From positions 1 to 64,000 of the forward strand of contig NIVC01003214.1 in assembly GCA_002269645.1 (NCBI GenBank): DNA of 64,000 nucleotides, given 5' to 3'. Under the pieces are notes generated by a model, which was not told the origin of the DNA, made no database searches, and saw only the letters and a list, made by a program, of their open reading frames with translations. The position numbers and the translations under genes are program-made. The first letter of the stretch is position 1; each line of letters begins with the position of its first letter. Shown here piece after piece: positions 20,901 to 26,900 of the stretch. Origin of the DNA: Macrostomum lignano (Eukaryota).

Positions 20901-23900
20901 GGCAATAAGAGTAACAGGTGAGAGTTTCTTACTCAGATATTGAGTCAATTCTTCACCGCTGGCAAAGGACGGAACCAGAAGGATCTTACGTGTCAGACTG
21001 TCCGCTCTGAGTAGATCGATAGCCTCAGAGAGCAACTCTCGCCAGTGGTCTGTGCTGAGCAGCTCGTCCGGCAGGACCAGCACCGTTGACTGAGCGCATT
21101 GCCGGTTCCGCAGGGCAGCCGACCTCAGTAGAGATGGTAAGGCTGACAGTGAGTACTCATGTACCTCTGTGATTGCCGGCAGTTTGAGGCCCTCGAAAGG
21201 CTTTGGGCAGAGTACCAGGTTCCGGCAGTCCCTGCTGATGATGAGCGAAACAGGTTGCTCAAAGGTGCTGGGTGAGTCATTCAGATGCGGCCTGTGGCGT
21301 TCCGGACCACCAGGGGAGTCTTCAGAGTCCGGCGATGGTAAGCGGCGTTTGGCAGGTGAAGCAGGCAGTCCCACCCGTGGAAGAGGCGGGGTCACAAAGA
21401 GGTCGTCAGCTGCCGACGTACAGCCGTTCTCAGGTGAGGCGACTTCGGTGGTCCCGCCTGCCGCCGGACTGCCGTCCGAAGCCGCACCCGCAGCCGCTGA
21501 GGGGTCGTTGCTGATCGTCGCATCGGCGCTCGCTGCCACGTCCCCGATGGTCGTCGCGCCGCCGTCCACTACCGAGTCGGCGTTGGTCTCCGTGGAGATG
21601 AAGGGGGGGGGGCATCGCTCGGCTCCGCTCTGCCAGACCGACTGCATGAGAGGAAGCAGGGGCTGAGGGCTGGTGGGGATAAATTCCTCAAACTCTCGCC
21701 GCTCTGCTCTGCTCGTCTCTCGTCGGCAGCGAGGCTGGCTGGCGGGCGAGGGCGGCGGACTCGCATTTCACGCGGGCGGGTGGCCGGCCAGCGCCCCAGG
21801 GGCTCCGGTGGCCCGGGGATGGCAAGGGGGATGATGGAAAAGGGAAGCGACAGGGAGGGGGGGCGATCGCCGCCTGGGCCAAGGAGGCCGGCATCTAGTA
21901 GTCTGGATTTTGGTCAGTTCAATCGAGTGAGGTTAGTTCAGCTTCGCTCCCCTGTTGAACTGACAGCGGTGAATCAGAGAGTCTGAGAAATGCTCATTTT
22001 ATCTGGCTGATTTTGTTTGCTTTTTTAGGAGGTCTTCTCCGCTGAAGAGAACAGTGACCGGTTTCCATTCCAGATGTCTAACAGTTCTAAGAGCTCCGCG
22101 GCACTGAAGAGCCGGCCGGCAGCAACTAGCCATGCGAGTGTGGGAGGCGGGGCTGGGGGTTTCCTGGAGAGAGAGAGAGAGAAAGAGAGAGAGAGAGAGA
22201 GAGAGAGAGAGAGCGGCCCCCCATGCGCTACCGACCTGCGCTGTGGACTGACTGGGCACCCGCCAGCCTGGCCGCTTCCGCAGCTGGGGCTCGGCCTGTC
22301 TCAGTCCCGCTCCCAGATTTATCGATTGAGCTGCTCTGAGCTGGGCTGGCTGGGCTGGGAGAGCCAGAGGAGACCCTTGGGCCGCCAAGGGCGGGGAGTG
22401 GGGTTGGGGAGACAAGATGGAGGGGCCGCTGGCTGACTCGCTAGGTGCTGCAGCGGGGAAGATGAGAGAGCACAGAATGAACGGCGCGGTGAATCCAACC
22501 TATCCACACGGCAGTGACCTCAAGCGAAAGCGGGGGGAGCAGTCTGAAAAATAGAAGTTTCTTTCCTTCCGCTAACGGAGAAAACAGAGAAACAATGAAT
22601 TAAGTGTCTGGAACTCTGGTTTTGACATGCCAGACAGGCAAGCAGAAAACTGCGCTGCAGAGCAGCCATGGTTGTTGAAGCCGCGACCGCTAGCGTTTGA
22701 AAGATTTCTTTCGGCCAAATATCTGTTGTCCACTGCCCGCATGTCCGCGAGGATCGGAGAGTGGAAAGCGTACTTTGTCTCCCCCCCCTGCGCGCGGAGG
22801 CATGCGTGCTGCGTGCCGGACTGCCCCGGGGAGGCGGGGTGGGGGTGGATCGTGTGCCTCCGCCCTTAGGGAGTCAGTCGGTGCGGAGAGCCAGGCGGAA
22901 AACCGCTGATGGAGGCGCGCGGGGCGTGGAAAAGGGAAGGCGATGAGGGCAGGGAGAGAGGGGACAAGGCCGAAGAGCTAGGAAGGGAAGGAGAGAGAGG
23001 GGGGAGGGTGAGGTCGGCTAGTGGGCGGGAGGTGGTAGCGGTCTGAAGGCCAGCGGGAGGCGGCTTTGAGAGGCGGAGAGCCGGGCAGCAGCGGCAGCAG
23101 CAGCCAAATTGGTGAGCGGTGGCGGTGAGAGAAAGGTCAAAAAGGAGAGTCGCCAACGGACCAAGAGAGAGCGAGAGCGAGAGACAGGCAGAGAGCCGAA
23201 GCCAAGGCAATCCCAGACAGCAGAGCCCAGCCCCAGCATCAGCGATCATGTCAGCGAAGCCCTGCTCAGTCTGCGAAGGCTGCGGCAGCAGCGGCGCCAA
23301 TTCGGCGCCAATTCAATCGGCGCCGCATCACCTGGGAAGCGCCGGCTCAGTTGCCGAGCTGAGGCGCCTGCTCGAGTCGCGCCTCGGTTTGGCGCCGGGC
23401 AGCGCCGAGCTCCGCATCGAACGGTTGACGCGGGCGGCGCGGGAGGGCGGCGCCTCACGCGACGGCTGTCCGGCGGCGAAGTGGATCGTCAGGCGGCGCC
23501 AGTCAGAACCCGAGCGCTACCTGGCGCTGGTCAGGCACAGGCAGCGGCACACCTGCGACACGGCCGTGACCGCCGTTGCCATGGTGTGCTGGGACGGCGT
23601 GCCCGCTCACCTGGCCGACTACATGTTCGGCTACCTGCGGGCCGAGCTACCCAGGACCGGCATTCCTAGCGAGCGGCGCTGCGCGGCCAACGACTCGCGC
23701 ACCTGCGCCTGCCAGGGCTTCGATCCGGACACCTGCGGCGCCGTGTACAGCTTCGGCTGCGCCTGGAGCCTCTTTCACAATGCCTGCAAATTTGCCAGGA
23801 CACGCGGCGCCGCGCGTAAATTCCGCCTGCGCTGCGCTGACTCCGAGCGAGACCTGGCGCGCGGCCTCAACTGCTTGGCCGACGCGGCGGCCCGCGTGTT

Positions 23901-26900
23901 GGCAACCGCGGCGCCGTCGGCCTTCGCCAACCAGACGCGGCAATCAGCCGCCGCCGTCGACTGTCGCTTGGGCTCGGCGGAGACGCCGCCAAGCCGACGG
24001 CCGTTCAGTGGTGCCACGGTGGCGTTGGACTTTTGCGCGCACTCTCACAAGGAGCCGGCGTTGGTCGACGGCGGCTGCAACGTCGTGGTGGCCCTCGGCC
24101 GGCGGGGCTGGCAGGCGCGGCAGGAGGAGCAGCTGCACGTGTTCCCGAACTACACGCTGAGCGACACGGACGAATTCGGCTCCGTCGAGGGCCAACGGCG
24201 CAAGTTTCAGACGGGCGACCTGCAGGCGCTCAGCAGTTTTCCGCGGATCGCTCGACTGCGCGGAGCCCCCGCGGAGTCGACAGGTTTGTTTGCCATGTCT
24301 GCCGGCAGGAAGCGGGCTCTCAGGACGCAGCCGCCGATGCCGCAGCCGCCGCAGCCGCAGCCGCCGATGCCGCAGCCGCCGATGCCGCAGGTCCTGCCGC
24401 CTCCACCGCCGCCGCCGCCGCCCCCTCCAACAGCAGCTCCCGTTCAGCAGCAGCCACCGCTTCATCACGCGACGGTCACTCTGGAGGACGGCTCGCCAGG
24501 CAGCATTGACAGCGGCATTGAGTCGCTAAAGAGCAACAATCAGAGCCCATTCAAGGAGGAGTCGCCCGCAACAGCGGTATCAGCGGTGGTGGCCGAGGCA
24601 GCGGCGGAGACATCCGCCAAGCCCCTGCCGCCGATATCGTCCTGGTTTCGCAAGTCGCCACCTCGTTGGGAGCCGCAGCAGCAGCAGCCGCAGCACTTTA
24701 AGCAGCAGGTGCAACTGCAGCGTCAGCTTATGTTGCAGAAGAAGCAGCAATACCAGCAATCTCGGTTGGCTTCTCAGATTCAACAGTTGCAGCAGAAACA
24801 GCAGCAGAAGCAGCAAGAGCAGCAGAAGCAACAACAACAGCAACAGCAGCTGCAGAAACAGCAACAGCAGCAGCAACAGCAGCAACAGCAGCAGCAACAG
24901 CAACAACAGCAGCAGCAACAGCTGTCCTTTCGACCCCAGATTGGTGAGCCTGTTGCGCCTTCTGCAGTCACTCCAGCAGCCGCTCCTCCGTCACCTGACT
25001 ATCAGCGCTGGTGGCACGCCAGTCGGCAGCAGCAGCAGCAGCAGCAAAACCCGAACTATTACAGCATCCAGCCTAGCCAGTATCCATGGCAACAGAGGCA
25101 TCATCACAGCCAGTATTCTTACTATTCGTCCTATCAATATTATCACAATGGCTACGAAAGGTATCCTTATTACTCAAGCAGCCAGCAGCAGGGTGGCTGC
25201 AGCTGTAACTACTGCCACCATGCCAGCTATCAGCAGCGGCACGTTCAGCCACCGATGCCGCAACCGCCTCCACCTCCACCGCCGCCTCCGCCGCCCCGAG
25301 GCCAGCCGGGCCCAGGAGACTGTGAGTTCCTCACCGACACCTTGGAAGTGTTTCGCGACTCTTCAAGCGGTGGCGTCGCCGTGGCGCTGTCGCACGGCGC
25401 CGTCCTGATTGAGGCCGGCAAGCGAGAGCCACGCGCGGTCACCGCCGTACGACGTCCGAACCGCTGGGACCCGGCCAGCATTCGGGTGGCCTTCTTCCAG
25501 CACAAGAATCTGCGCTACGAGCGGCACGGCTTTGCCGAGTACGCGGAGAAGATGCGCCTACTGCGCCAGAGGCGAGGCGGCGACGAAGGCGAGGAGACGG
25601 CGACGGCGTCGGTGCCATTGTCGGAGGCGGATGAGGCTGTCGATGAAGTTGACGCGTCCTGAAACTCGCCGATATTTTTTGGCTCTTTTGCCAACATTAA
25701 TTGCCTTCTCTGAAAGCAAATTCAATCAAAATGTACTGTCTTCTAACCTCCATTCCTGTCCCTCTTCACTTCTTCATTCCTGTCCCTCTTCACTCCTTCA
25801 TTCCTGTCCCTCTTCACTCCTCCATTCCTGTCCCTCTTCACTTCTTCATTCCTGTCCCTCTTCACTCCTTCATTCCTGTCCCTCTTCACTCCTTCATTCC
25901 TGTCCCTCTTCACTCCTTCATTCCTGTCTATCTTCACTCCTCCATTCCTGTCCATCTACACTCCTTGATTCCTATCCATCTTCACTCCTCCATTCCTGTC
26001 CCTCTTCACTCCTTCATTCCTGTCCATCTTCACTTCTTCATTCCTGTCCCTCTTCACTCCTTCATTCCTGTCCCTCTTCACTCCTTCATTCCTGTCCCTC
26101 TTCACTCCTTCATTCCTGTCCATCTTCACTCCTCCATTCCTGTCCATCTTCACTCCTTGATTCCTGTCCATCAACACTCCTTGATTCCTGTCCATCTTCA
26201 CTCCATTCCTGTCCATCTTCACTCCATTCCTGTCCATCTTCACTCCTTGATTCCTGTCCATCTTCACTCCTCCATTCCTGTCCACCTTCACTCCTTGATT
26301 CCTGTCCCCCTGCACTCCTTGATTCCTGTCCATCTTCACTCCTTGATTCCTGTCCATCTTCACTCCTTGATTCCTGTCCCTCTTCACTCCTTGATTCCTG
26401 TCCATCTTCACTCCTTGATTCCTGTCCATCTTCACTCCTTGATTCCTGTCCATCTTCACTCCTTGATTCCTGTCCCCCTGCGCTCCTCCATTCCTGTCCA
26501 TCTTCACTCCTTGATTCCTGTGTCCCTCTTCACTCCTTGATTCCTGTCCATCTTCACTCCTTGATTCCTGTCCATCTTCACTCCTTGATTCCTGTCCATC
26601 TTCACTCCTTGATTCCTGTCCATCTTCACTCCTTGATTCCTGTCCATCTTCACTCCTTGATTCCTGTCCATCTTCACTCCTTGATTCCTGTCCATCTTCA
26701 CTCCTCCATTCCTGTCCATCTTCACTCCTCCATTCCTGTCCATCTACACTCCTCCATTCCTGTCCATCTTCACTCCTCCATTCCTGTCCATCTTCACTCC
26801 TCCATTCCTGTCCATCTTCACTCCTCCATTCCTGTCCATCTTCACTCCTCCATTCCTGTCCATCTTCACTCCTTCATCCCTGTCCCTCTTCACTCCTTGA

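Follow-up and report, generated by a model that had tools for sequence, protein, structure and literature searches.

A TET orthologue with substituted Fe(II) and 2OG ligands in a probable macrostomid flatworm: a candidate pseudo-TET

Introduction

Human TET2 (PDB 4NM6) is composed of a Cys-rich domain and a subsequent double-stranded beta-helix, the latter of which is split by a long low-complexity insert, and it lacks a CXXC domain, as do many TETs of spiralians. Among chromatin proteins of other families, JARID2 (an inactive JmjC protein) and DNMT3L have kept the enzyme fold but lost the cofactor ligands, and they work as scaffolds or regulators. CMD1, a TET homologue of Chlamydomonas, uses vitamin C in place of 2OG (PDB 7CY4-7CY8). 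In TET2 itself, activity can be lost with the structure conserved; namely, H1881R and R1896S are class Ia human variants of this kind, and the listed changes that abolish activity but preserve the structure include H1881R/Q/N and R1896M/S/G (PMC6625141). Furthermore, gene activation by Drosophila TET does not depend on catalysis (PMC11068012), and catalysis-independent functions have been described for Drosophila TET with PRC1 and for mouse TET1 (PMC11068012, PMC11229741, PMC10287924).

Here, we describe a TET gene in a contiguous stretch of 64,000 nucleotides (hereafter, the window), which in the best reading of the sequence is a TET orthologue of a macrostomid flatworm other than Macrostomum lignano. 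The protein resembles TET2 in architecture, including the absence of CXXC, but differs from metazoan TETs by D1384E, H1881R, R1896S, S1898R, N1387L, and Y1902F (TET2 numbering), positions that are unchanged in the other TETs surveyed. Unlike JARID2 and DNMT3L, which are old paralogues beside active enzymes, the window TET would be the lineage's own TET orthologue. CMD1 is comparable in having no canonical 2OG-binding arrangement and is hence a possible analogue of the state in M. lignano; its iron ligands are, however, kept, unlike those of the window TET, and it was a weak match in Foldseek (E about 0.3). While two of the changes recur at the same positions in class Ia TET2 (PMC6625141), those variants are single, somatic, and associated with disease, whereas in the window the changes occur together, in the germline, and have become fixed in a gene that is intact. 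Action without oxidation, as in the Drosophila and mouse TETs, is also the role that we propose here, but the active site is intact in those proteins and their inactive forms were engineered; in the window TET it was lost naturally.

Results

An intact TET gene. From the sequence alone, an unbroken TET-family frame of 804 codons had been proposed, and the open reading frame, Pfam, and the match to TET2 all bear this out (Table 1). The frame remains open upstream to position 23119, the first in-frame ATG being at 23248, and the coding sequence is complete and intronless in a single exon. Tet_JBP (PF12851) was detected at 80.8 bits, above the cut-off of 34.9 (E = 8.3e-23), and phmmer aligned residues 27-345 and 685-771 of the protein with TET2 (4nm6), the first of these stretches being about 45% identical to human TET2. 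The two stretches are separated by a Q/P-rich low-complexity insert of ~340 residues, which remains in frame; the Cys-rich domain directly before the beta-helix and the large insert within it reproduce the architecture of metazoan TETs, and no CXXC domain was found in the protein. The alignment to TET2 is not gapless, as had first been described, but contains a few short indels in phmmer. An AlphaFold model of the construct without the insert was of medium confidence (mean pLDDT 63, pTM 0.69) and of low confidence around the active site, and in Foldseek it matched the TET2-DNA structures 4nm6, 7ne3, and 5d9y with a target-normalised TM-score of 0.75-0.79 and E about 1e-31, in support of the TET2-like fold that had been read from the sequence.

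Table 1. Positions of the TET gene, its motifs, and neighbouring exons in the window
Feature	Position	Strand	Evidence
Two exons of large immunoglobulin-domain gene, synteny with M. lignano	3466..3977	-	tblastx vs M. lignano sequence 524-775 and 860-1012, 65-68% aa identity; Pfam I-set
Further I-set immunoglobulin exon upstream of TET	16190..16600	-	Pfam I-set 2.4e-15; M. lignano TET likewise has an upstream minus-strand I-set/fn3 gene
TET orthologue CDS, 804 aa and stop	23248..25662	+	ORF list; Pfam Tet_JBP; TET2 match E = 2.5e-97
N-terminal Cys cluster PCSVCEGCG, possible equivalent of TET2 C1133/C1135 zinc site	23260..23286	+	MAFFT with TET2, TET3, M. lignano; loose correspondence
Cys-rich domain and first half of double-stranded beta-helix, aa 28-345	23329..24282	+	phmmer stretch 1; tblastn of 27 TETs; 57-64% identity to M. 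lignano TET
RRC motif (TET2 R1261/R1262/C1263), kept	23674..23682	+	Residue map
H267-K-E269 at HxD iron motif, D1384E	24046..24054	+	Codons CAC AAG GAG
Low-complexity Q/P-rich insert in beta-helix, as in all metazoan TETs	24283..25299	+	Translation; gap between TET2-matching stretches
Conserved insert island DSGIES (M. lignano: DSGFES)	24508..24525	+	tblastn alignment
Conserved 12-residue insert island; M. lignano counterpart LPPIASWFRKSP	24625..24660	+	tblastn alignment
Second beta-helix half, aa 685-771	25300..25560	+	phmmer stretch 2; 60% identity to M. lignano
Arg729 at distal iron ligand position H1881	25432..25434	+	Codon CGC
S744-I-R746 at 2OG-binding RxS (R1896-I-S1898)	25477..25485	+	Codons AGC ATT CGG
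F750-Q-H752: TET2 Y1902F, H1904 kept	25495..25503	+	Residue map

Substituted and retained residues. The codons and the residue map confirmed all five substitutions at the Fe(II)/2OG site that had been noted. In place of the Fe(II)-binding His-x-Asp...His triad, the protein has H267-K-E269 and R729, and no replacement His was found near position 729 in the translation. The Arg that binds the C5 carboxylate of 2OG (R1896 in TET2) is S744, and the next Arg comes two residues on, at position 746 in place of S1898. Of the three base-contact residues, N1387, Y1902, and H1904, only the last is kept (L272, F750, and H752). In contrast to these cofactor residues, the residues determining the fold are largely retained: 13 of the 14 alignable Cys/His (C1193, H1219, C1221, C1263, C1271, C1273, C1281, C1289, C1298, C1358, C1378, H1380, and H1912) are conserved. 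The claim that the structural zinc ligands are kept thus holds for these 13, but Ala replaces C1374, and the N-terminal pair C1133/C1135 corresponds just loosely to the CSVCEGC cluster. R1261/R1262 of the RRC motif and H1904 in FQH were found as had been read, and H1382 and H1416 are retained as well; so are the DNA-recognition residues W1291, K1299, R1302, H1904, and K1905, with S1303 replaced by Thr. Because Arg has replaced the distal His, Glu the Asp of HxD, Ser the 2OG-binding Arg, and Leu the base-contacting Asn, binding of Fe(II) and 2OG is most likely lost, and with it the oxidation of 5-methylcytosine; with cofactor residues lost and fold-determining residues retained, the window TET has the residue pattern expected of a pseudoenzyme.

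Invariance of the substituted positions. We surveyed 172 other TET proteins from cnidarians to vertebrates, including those of 5mC-poor Diptera. D1384 was invariant in all 167 sequences aligning there (one further sequence was gapped), and neither H1881 nor R1896 was replaced in any of the 148 sequences aligned at those positions, again with one further sequence gapped. Departures at these three positions were restricted to the TETs of the window and of M. lignano, and the substitution pattern of the window TET is, as judged from this alignment, far from chance. Together with the class Ia variants, the invariance strongly suggests that the protein is enzymatically dead, as the sequence-only reading had put it.

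Relationship to the TET of M. lignano. The nearest relative of the window TET is Mlig025520 g1/g2/g3 of M. lignano (PAA84297.1, PAA48208.1, and PAA45902.1), with an identity of 57% in the conserved domains and 64% in the TET core. The M. lignano protein is longer by ~60 residues at its N terminus; both proteins carry SIDSGxES and LPPIxSWFRKSP in the insert. Since both coding sequences are intronless and have the same immunoglobulin-domain gene upstream, the two genes are regarded as orthologues. For the same reasons, and with the frame intact and no A-tract after the stop, a processed retrocopy was rejected; none of the marks of a retrocopy or pseudogene, namely a new genomic site, a broken frame, and a poly(A) remnant, was seen. 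Regarding the active site, M. lignano TET retains the iron triad (HKD and the distal His) but carries R1896S, N1387A, and Y1902F. Its sequence around R1896 is AGC ATG AGT (S-M-S, vs S-I-R in the window), in which the Ser codon AGC is identical to that of the window and the Ser is present in all three copies. The substitution of R1896 by Ser, the loss of N1387, and Y1902F are hence common to both, and the active site was therefore already eroding before the two lineages diverged. No second TET was found in the 64-kb window by tblastn of 27 TETs, and no M. lignano TET cluster was recovered besides Mlig025520; as synteny pairs the window TET with this sole recovered M. lignano gene, no protein on which it could act as a dominant-negative came to light. 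Our searches returned no further macrostomid TET orthologue by which the changes could be assigned to branches and no paper on Macrostomum TET.

Selection and rates. By the Nei-Gojobori method, window and M. lignano TETs gave dN 0.39 and dS about 2.6 in the N-terminal domain, a ratio of about 0.15, and a ratio of about 0.25 in the C-terminal domain; with dS saturated, these ratios are averages over both lineages and are silent on the recent past of the window lineage. Long-term constraint as such an average is evident from these comparisons, and the neighbouring immunoglobulin exons are 65-68% identical vs 64% for the TET core. Lineage-unique changes number 42 in the window and 30 in M. lignano, a difference that is not significant (chi-square 2.0). 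At highly conserved columns, they number six vs four in the Cys-rich part and 15 vs five in the beta-helix part, with no significant effect of region by lineage (Fisher p = 0.43); 120 of 169 such columns are retained in the window vs 132 of 169 in M. lignano, and the replacements in the window are mostly conservative (K>R, E>D, S>A, and M>L). By our arithmetic, the rate excess implies a neutral divergence of ~0.014 substitutions per site and hence ~0.1 hits in four given codons, whereas three or four catalytic codons have changed in the window lineage, too many for a short neutral phase. The claim that the gene is kept by selection is therefore upheld as a two-lineage average, but the window lineage is mildly accelerated and a recent death within it is possible. 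For selection after the loss of catalysis, the evidence comprises the pairwise ratios (with dS saturated), the R1896S common with M. lignano, and the small rate excess, all drawn from two sequences.

Discussion

We consider, with a probability of about 0.6, that the gene in the window is a TET orthologue that has lost the ability to oxidise 5mC and has been retained for a role in chromatin or DNA binding that needs no catalysis. Such a protein would support the view that TETs can function without their chemistry. In the common ancestor of both lineages, catalysis would have been compromised or the co-substrate changed, as represented by the substitutions of the 2OG-binding Arg, Asn, and Y1902, and the iron site would have been lost in a later step in the window lineage. 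The protein would persist because, we infer, it does something needing no chemistry, such as binding of DNA or chromatin and recruitment of partners. Continued selection in the window lineage and a role as scaffold or reader would belong to this reading; a choice among reader, scaffold, and dominant-negative roles is speculation, and that Glu269 and Arg729 form a salt bridge where the metal used to sit would be a guess. Weighing against the reading are the larger loss of highly conserved columns in the window lineage, the frameshift in an M. lignano copy, the limited confidence of the AlphaFold model, and the sequence after the stop, where no AATAAA or ATTAAA occurs within 1.8 kb and a tandem array starts after ~85 bp. 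A wider proposal is more tentative and, in our view, falls somewhat short of probable: the only TET of macrostomids might be a long-lived natural pseudo-dioxygenase, having given up its 2OG-binding Arg before the split and, in the window lineage, its iron site as well, with purifying selection throughout. If that is true, TET would do its conserved job in macrostomids without any enzymatic activity, by binding DNA or chromatin and recruiting partners.

The main rival is that the gene is a unitary pseudogene of recent origin; namely, TET would have become dispensable in the window lineage, as might happen if 5mC had largely or wholly disappeared, and would be decaying with no stop or frameshift yet. 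The loss of catalytic residues and the mild excess of changes in this lineage, including that at the highly conserved columns of the beta-helix, are compatible with such decay, and so are the absence of AATAAA and ATTAAA within 1.8 kb 3' of the stop, the frameshift in one of the three M. lignano copies, and the repeated loss of parts of the methylation toolkit in flatworms (PMC8330077, PMC11292947). Nonetheless, all 804 codons are open although 4.3% of the possible single-base changes in the frame would give a stop, and even the repeat-rich insert of 340 codons is still in frame. The conserved Cys/His are kept, the conserved columns have mostly accepted conservative replacements, and the rate excess is too small for three or four catalytic hits under uniform neutral decay. 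R1896S, the first catalytic loss, is furthermore older than a split with saturated dS, and the frames have stayed open in both lineages. We therefore regard a young, still-open pseudogene as unlikely.

It is improbable, on the other hand, that the window TET is a regulatory, inactive form beside a second, intact TET elsewhere in the genome, acting as a DNMT3L-like cofactor or as a dominant-negative competitor for DNA. Inactive paralogues regulating active ones are common among pseudoenzymes, the DNA-contact residues are retained, and the portion of the genome inspected is 64 kb. Synteny, however, marks the gene as the orthologue of Mlig025520 and not an extra copy, the window and the M. lignano searches yielded no other TET, and a single TET is the usual state in invertebrates (PMC8330077).

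Very improbable is a protein that is still an enzyme with non-canonical chemistry, in which H267/E269 would act with another metal ligand, Arg746, two residues further on in the same strand, would bind the carboxylate in place of R1896, or the protein would, like CMD1, use some co-substrate that is not 2OG. The Arg and Ser of RxS appear swapped (S-I-R vs R-I-S) rather than merely lost, and on a beta-strand, side chains at positions i and i+2 point in the same direction; HxE is also found in some 2OG oxygenases. The full iron triad without R1896 in M. lignano would fit an ancestral switch of co-substrate. Arg, however, does not ligate Fe(II), H1881R is a known loss-of-activity variant (PMC6625141), and a substitute His is missing near position 729. 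The base-holding residues N1387 and Y1902 are altered too, and none of the 172 surveyed TETs tolerates these changes. Least credible of all is that errors in sequencing or assembly produced the key codons: one base change from the common codons would suffice for H>R, and likewise for R>S, but at least five separate codons over 1.4 kb and a cluster of neighbouring replacements are affected, Ser at R1896 was independently seen in three M. lignano copies, and the frame is perfectly preserved.

As a minor observation on the insert, the DSGIES island fits a DSGxxS pattern, which we take to be that of a phosphodegron; a motif of this type occurs in just two of the other TET inserts scanned.

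The TET gene of the window and its predicted fold

The TET gene of the window is a single uninterrupted frame with 804 codons before the stop, as the sequence-only reading had described it and as the ORF list and the translation bear out; the frame is open from 23119, and its first in-frame ATG lies at 23248. In Pfam, the protein was assigned to Tet_JBP (PF12851, E = 8.3e-23), and when all PDB chains were searched by phmmer, the sole matches were catalytic-domain constructs of human TET2 (E = 2.5e-97). The match to TET2 falls into two stretches, namely residues 27-345 and 685-771, with a Q/P-rich insert of 340 residues between them, which is the usual layout of a metazoan TET. 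While the alignment to TET2 had been drawn by eye as gapless, a few short gaps are present, and the homology itself holds.

The AlphaFold model of the full-length protein was poor and unusable (pLDDT 51), and that of a construct without the low-complexity insert inside the beta-helix was of medium quality (pLDDT 63, pTM 0.69). Foldseek placed the insert-deleted model on the TET2-DNA structures (E ~1e-31, target-normalised TM-score 0.75-0.79), and fungal CcTet was a distant second in the ranking. The fold, which had been supposed to be preserved, is thus compatible with that of TET2 in a medium-quality model; with low confidence at the zinc-rich loop and the HKE strand, the model is read for fold compatibility only. 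Domain, architecture, and fold therefore place the window protein, by descent, in the metazoan TET family. No CXXC exon was found within the window.

The gene lies in a local GC peak (0.60-0.65) inside a window of 47% GC, and GC3 is 0.77 in its CDS versus 0.55 in that of M. lignano (10001-12793 of L003, a locus with a TET CDS). CpG is not depleted; the observed/expected ratio, which alone is uninformative about methylation, is 1.05 in the TET CDS versus 0.73 in the whole window.

Features located in the window
Feature	Position	Strand	Source or detail
I-set exon	3466-3977	-	Pfam
I-set exon	16190-16600	-	Pfam
Penelope-like retroelement ORF	18590-19981	-	reverse transcriptase and GIY-YIG endonuclease
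ORF adjoining the Penelope-like element	20134-20778	-	
ORF adjoining the Penelope-like element	20817-21647	-	
TET gene	23248-25662	+	ORF list, translation
CAC AAG GAG, H-K-E	24046-24054	+	codon read
Insert island, DSGIES	24508-24525		M. lignano DSGFES
Insert island, LPPI(S/A)SWFRKSP	24625-24660		
CGC, Arg at TET2 H1881	25432-25434	+	codon read
AGC, Ser at TET2 R1896	25477-25479	+	codon read
CGG, Arg at TET2 S1898	25483-25485	+	codon read
p62/sequestosome-like gene, first apparent exon	42112-42954	+	PB1, ZZ zinc-finger
p62/sequestosome-like gene, second apparent exon	43357-43809	+	UBA
Gly-rich ORF	49723-50238	+	ALK/LTK glycine-rich domain, PF12810, 6e-07
Gly-rich ORF	52398-52871	+	
Minisatellite arrays	5626-16872, 25747-26937, 28979-31531, 34098-34620, 37693-38194, 50927-51772		periods 4-61 bp

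Catalytic and structural residues

The substituted codons named by the sequence-only reading were all exact on codon read-out. By the numbering of human TET2, furthermore, Leu is found at N1387 and Phe at Y1902, while R1261/R1262, H1382, H1416, T1372, and H1904 are unchanged. Retention of the conserved Cys/His residues, which had also been proposed, was confirmed at 13 positions (C1193, H1219, C1221, C1263, C1271, C1273, C1281, C1289, C1298, C1358, C1378, H1380, and H1912) but not at C1374, which is Ala, nor at the N-terminal C1133/C1135, where only a loose match to a CSVCEGC cluster is seen. Among the residues that TET2 needs for DNA recognition (PMC6625141), W1291, K1299, R1302, H1904, and K1905 are unchanged, and S1303 is replaced by Thr.

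We then mapped the key positions in 172 TET-family proteins from two database searches, the taxa of which include mosquito, spider, brine shrimp, ostracod, sea cucumber, Hydra, and many vertebrates. In every surveyed TET aligning there, D1384 is Asp, H1881 is His, and R1896 is Arg; H1416 is likewise His in 163 out of 163. Only two proteins depart from the canonical pattern, namely the window protein and that of M. lignano: at the five C-terminal key positions, the former reads R-S-R-F-H and the latter H-S-S-F-H, whereas the other TETs read H-R-S-Y-H. Mosquitoes are 5mC-poor, and their TETs retain the canonical residues.

In the window protein, therefore, the scaffold and DNA-contact residues are retained, and the iron and 2OG ligands are gone. 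Judged from its sequence as an enzyme, it falls short in the defining features, having neither an intact iron triad nor the Arg for 2OG and only one base contact out of three, and it should not carry the annotation “methylcytosine dioxygenase,” which is the UniRef name of its M. lignano relative. We consider, with a probability of roughly 0.6, that the window TET cannot oxidise 5mC and is kept because of a role on DNA or chromatin that needs no catalysis.

Possible selection on the window TET

The gene was compared pairwise with g2 (PAA48208.1), one of the M. lignano TET copies, by the Nei-Gojobori method, and the long-term constraint seen in the ratios is an average over the two lineages: in the N-terminal domain, dN was 0.39 and dS ~2.6 (saturated), giving a ratio of ~0.15, and the ratio in the C-terminal domain was ~0.25. 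At 64% identity, the TET core is no more diverged than the immunoglobulin exons nearby (65-68%). With a consensus of 77 other TETs as the outgroup, 42 changes were unique to the window and 30 to M. lignano (chi-square 2.0, not significant). Out of 169 columns conserved at 90% or more, 120 are unchanged in the window and 132 in M. lignano; also, 26 further conserved columns were changed in both, and the macrostomid TET was therefore already unusual. In the Cys-rich part, window-only losses are about as many as M. lignano-only ones (6 vs 4), and in the beta-helix they are in excess (15 vs 5, binomial p = 0.04); a region-by-lineage test ran in the direction expected for relaxation limited to the beta-helix and was not significant (Fisher p = 0.43). 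The window-only replacements are mostly conservative.

The mild acceleration of the window lineage would be in line with a young pseudogene, the frame of which is not yet broken. A missing poly(A) signal points the same way; neither AATAAA nor ATTAAA is present in the 1.8 kb 3' of the TET stop, but flatworm signals may differ, and this absence was hence not weighed either way. A young pseudogene is nonetheless rather unlikely, given the intact frame and the concentration of the changes on catalytic codons. By our own arithmetic, the excess of ~12 changes in ~400 sites corresponds to ~0.014 neutral substitutions per site; the hits expected on four given codons are ~0.1, and three or four catalytic codons were changed in the window lineage. 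It follows that the catalytic site must have been open to change for far more time than the remainder of the protein, which is a prediction of a selected pseudoenzyme and not of uniform decay.

Furthermore, 4.3% of the single-base changes in the TET CDS create a stop, and the insert is repeat-rich yet in frame. Two islands in the insert, SIDSG(I/F)ES and LPPI(S/A)SWFRKSP, are common to both species despite the saturated synonymous sites. Both the open frame at this risk of a stop and the conserved islands fit the reading of a selected pseudoenzyme. The insert is otherwise fast-evolving. We take the first island to fit the DSGxxS phosphodegron pattern, which, among the other TET inserts scanned, was found in two only.

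Orthology with the M. lignano TET

The nearest protein is Mlig025520 of M. lignano; in the conserved domains, its identity is 57%, versus 41-47% for all other TETs. Nothing nearer emerged when the insert-deleted protein was searched by word index, when 1.84 billion representatives were searched exhaustively by HMMER, or with a C-terminal profile, and the exact window protein has no record in the public collection. The M. lignano TET exists in three near-identical copies, of which g1 and g2 (930 aa) are in one frame throughout. In the third copy, g3 (locus L001, NIVC01005213.1), the frame is shifted within the Q-rich insert, apparently by a single base; comparison of the protein P0001 with P0173 and P0174 (g2) places the switch at ~12300-12450 of the locus, and the annotated g3 protein is without the C-terminal half of the beta-helix. 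This frameshift is either copy-specific or a (long-read) assembly error, and we rejected it as a sign of general decay since g1 and g2 read in one frame.

Like the window TET, the M. lignano CDS is intronless, and a very large I-set/fn3 gene lies upstream of it on the minus strand. Two of the immunoglobulin exons upstream of the window TET match L001 with 65-68% amino acid identity. From the intronless CDS and these matching exons, the window gene and the M. lignano TET are syntenic orthologues, the former from a rather distant macrostomid. A retrocopy was rejected because the M. lignano orthologue is likewise intronless and syntenic; an extra paralogue was also rejected by the synteny.

Our view of the window genome covers 64 kb only, which would accommodate the idea that the protein serves as a cofactor or a dominant-negative alongside a second, intact TET. 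This idea is improbable in light of the synteny with the M. lignano TET and of the finding of no other macrostomid TET; within the 64-kb window, there is no second TET.

Order of the losses in the active site

The M. lignano TET retains H-K-D and the distal His, but R1896 is Ser (AGC, a codon identical to that of the window), N1387 is Ala, and Y1902 is Phe; its key regions are residues 326-331 and 854-877 of g2. As read from these residues, the erosion of the active site appears to have begun earlier than the window lineage. In the simplest history, the Arg that anchors 2OG would have been lost in the common ancestor together with a part of the base pocket, and D1384E, H1881R, and S1898R would have followed in the window lineage. 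On a strand, every second residue points the same way, and S-I-R in the window protein versus R-I-S in TET2 could hence be a compensating swap; this swap cannot rebuild the iron centre without the distal His. As a guess, Glu269 and Arg729 of the window protein might form a salt bridge.

For the M. lignano state, which retains the iron triad and could resemble CMD1, a vitamin C-dependent protein, an enzyme still active with unusual chemistry is conceivable; with Arg in place of the distal His, however, it is very unlikely for the window protein, and we give this explanation little credence. The activity or co-substrate of the M. lignano TET deserves a test in its own right. A sequence artefact is hardly credible, as at least five separate codons are affected and Ser at R1896 is repeated in the three M. 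lignano copies.

Possible role and significance

If retained for a non-catalytic role, the window TET would act on DNA or chromatin without catalysis. Enzyme folds have inactive members with a role in chromatin, such as the JmjC domain of JARID2 and DNMT3L, and the window TET may be alike in its proposed function. In Drosophila, TET and PRC1 activate genes independently of catalysis (PMC11068012), and mouse TET1 has non-catalytic functions (PMC11229741, PMC10287924). Also, the Cys-rich domain of TET2 was reported to bind H3K36me1/2 (PMC5412023). In M. lignano, low 5mC was reported with DNMT1 and DNMT3 present (PMC11292947), and a role tied to methylated DNA is therefore possible.

If our reading is true, a naturally ligand-less TET would testify independently, by way of evolution, to an essential role outside catalysis. 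Whether the importance of TET proteins lies mainly in enzymatic or in scaffold functions has so far been approached via catalytic-dead alleles that were engineered in mouse and fly. A graded natural series would be available from the canonical TET through that of M. lignano (iron triad without the 2OG Arg) to that of the window species (without both). M. lignano is a laboratory model, in which RNAi and rescue should be feasible. The finding also bears on the erosion of the toolkit for DNA methylation in flatworms. In the searchable literature, no description of a naturally ligand-less TET orthologue was found, nor anything specific on Macrostomum TET, 5hmC, or Mlig025520; the window TET is a good, testable lead.

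Other features of the window

The Penelope-like element lies ~1.5-4.5 kb upstream of the TET gene. The two Gly-rich ORFs may belong to a receptor tyrosine kinase-like gene. Minisatellite arrays, each of up to 1.5 kb, are dense in the window and give rise to many spurious long ORFs; an array with a 24-bp period and ~50 copies begins ~85 bp 3' of the TET stop codon.
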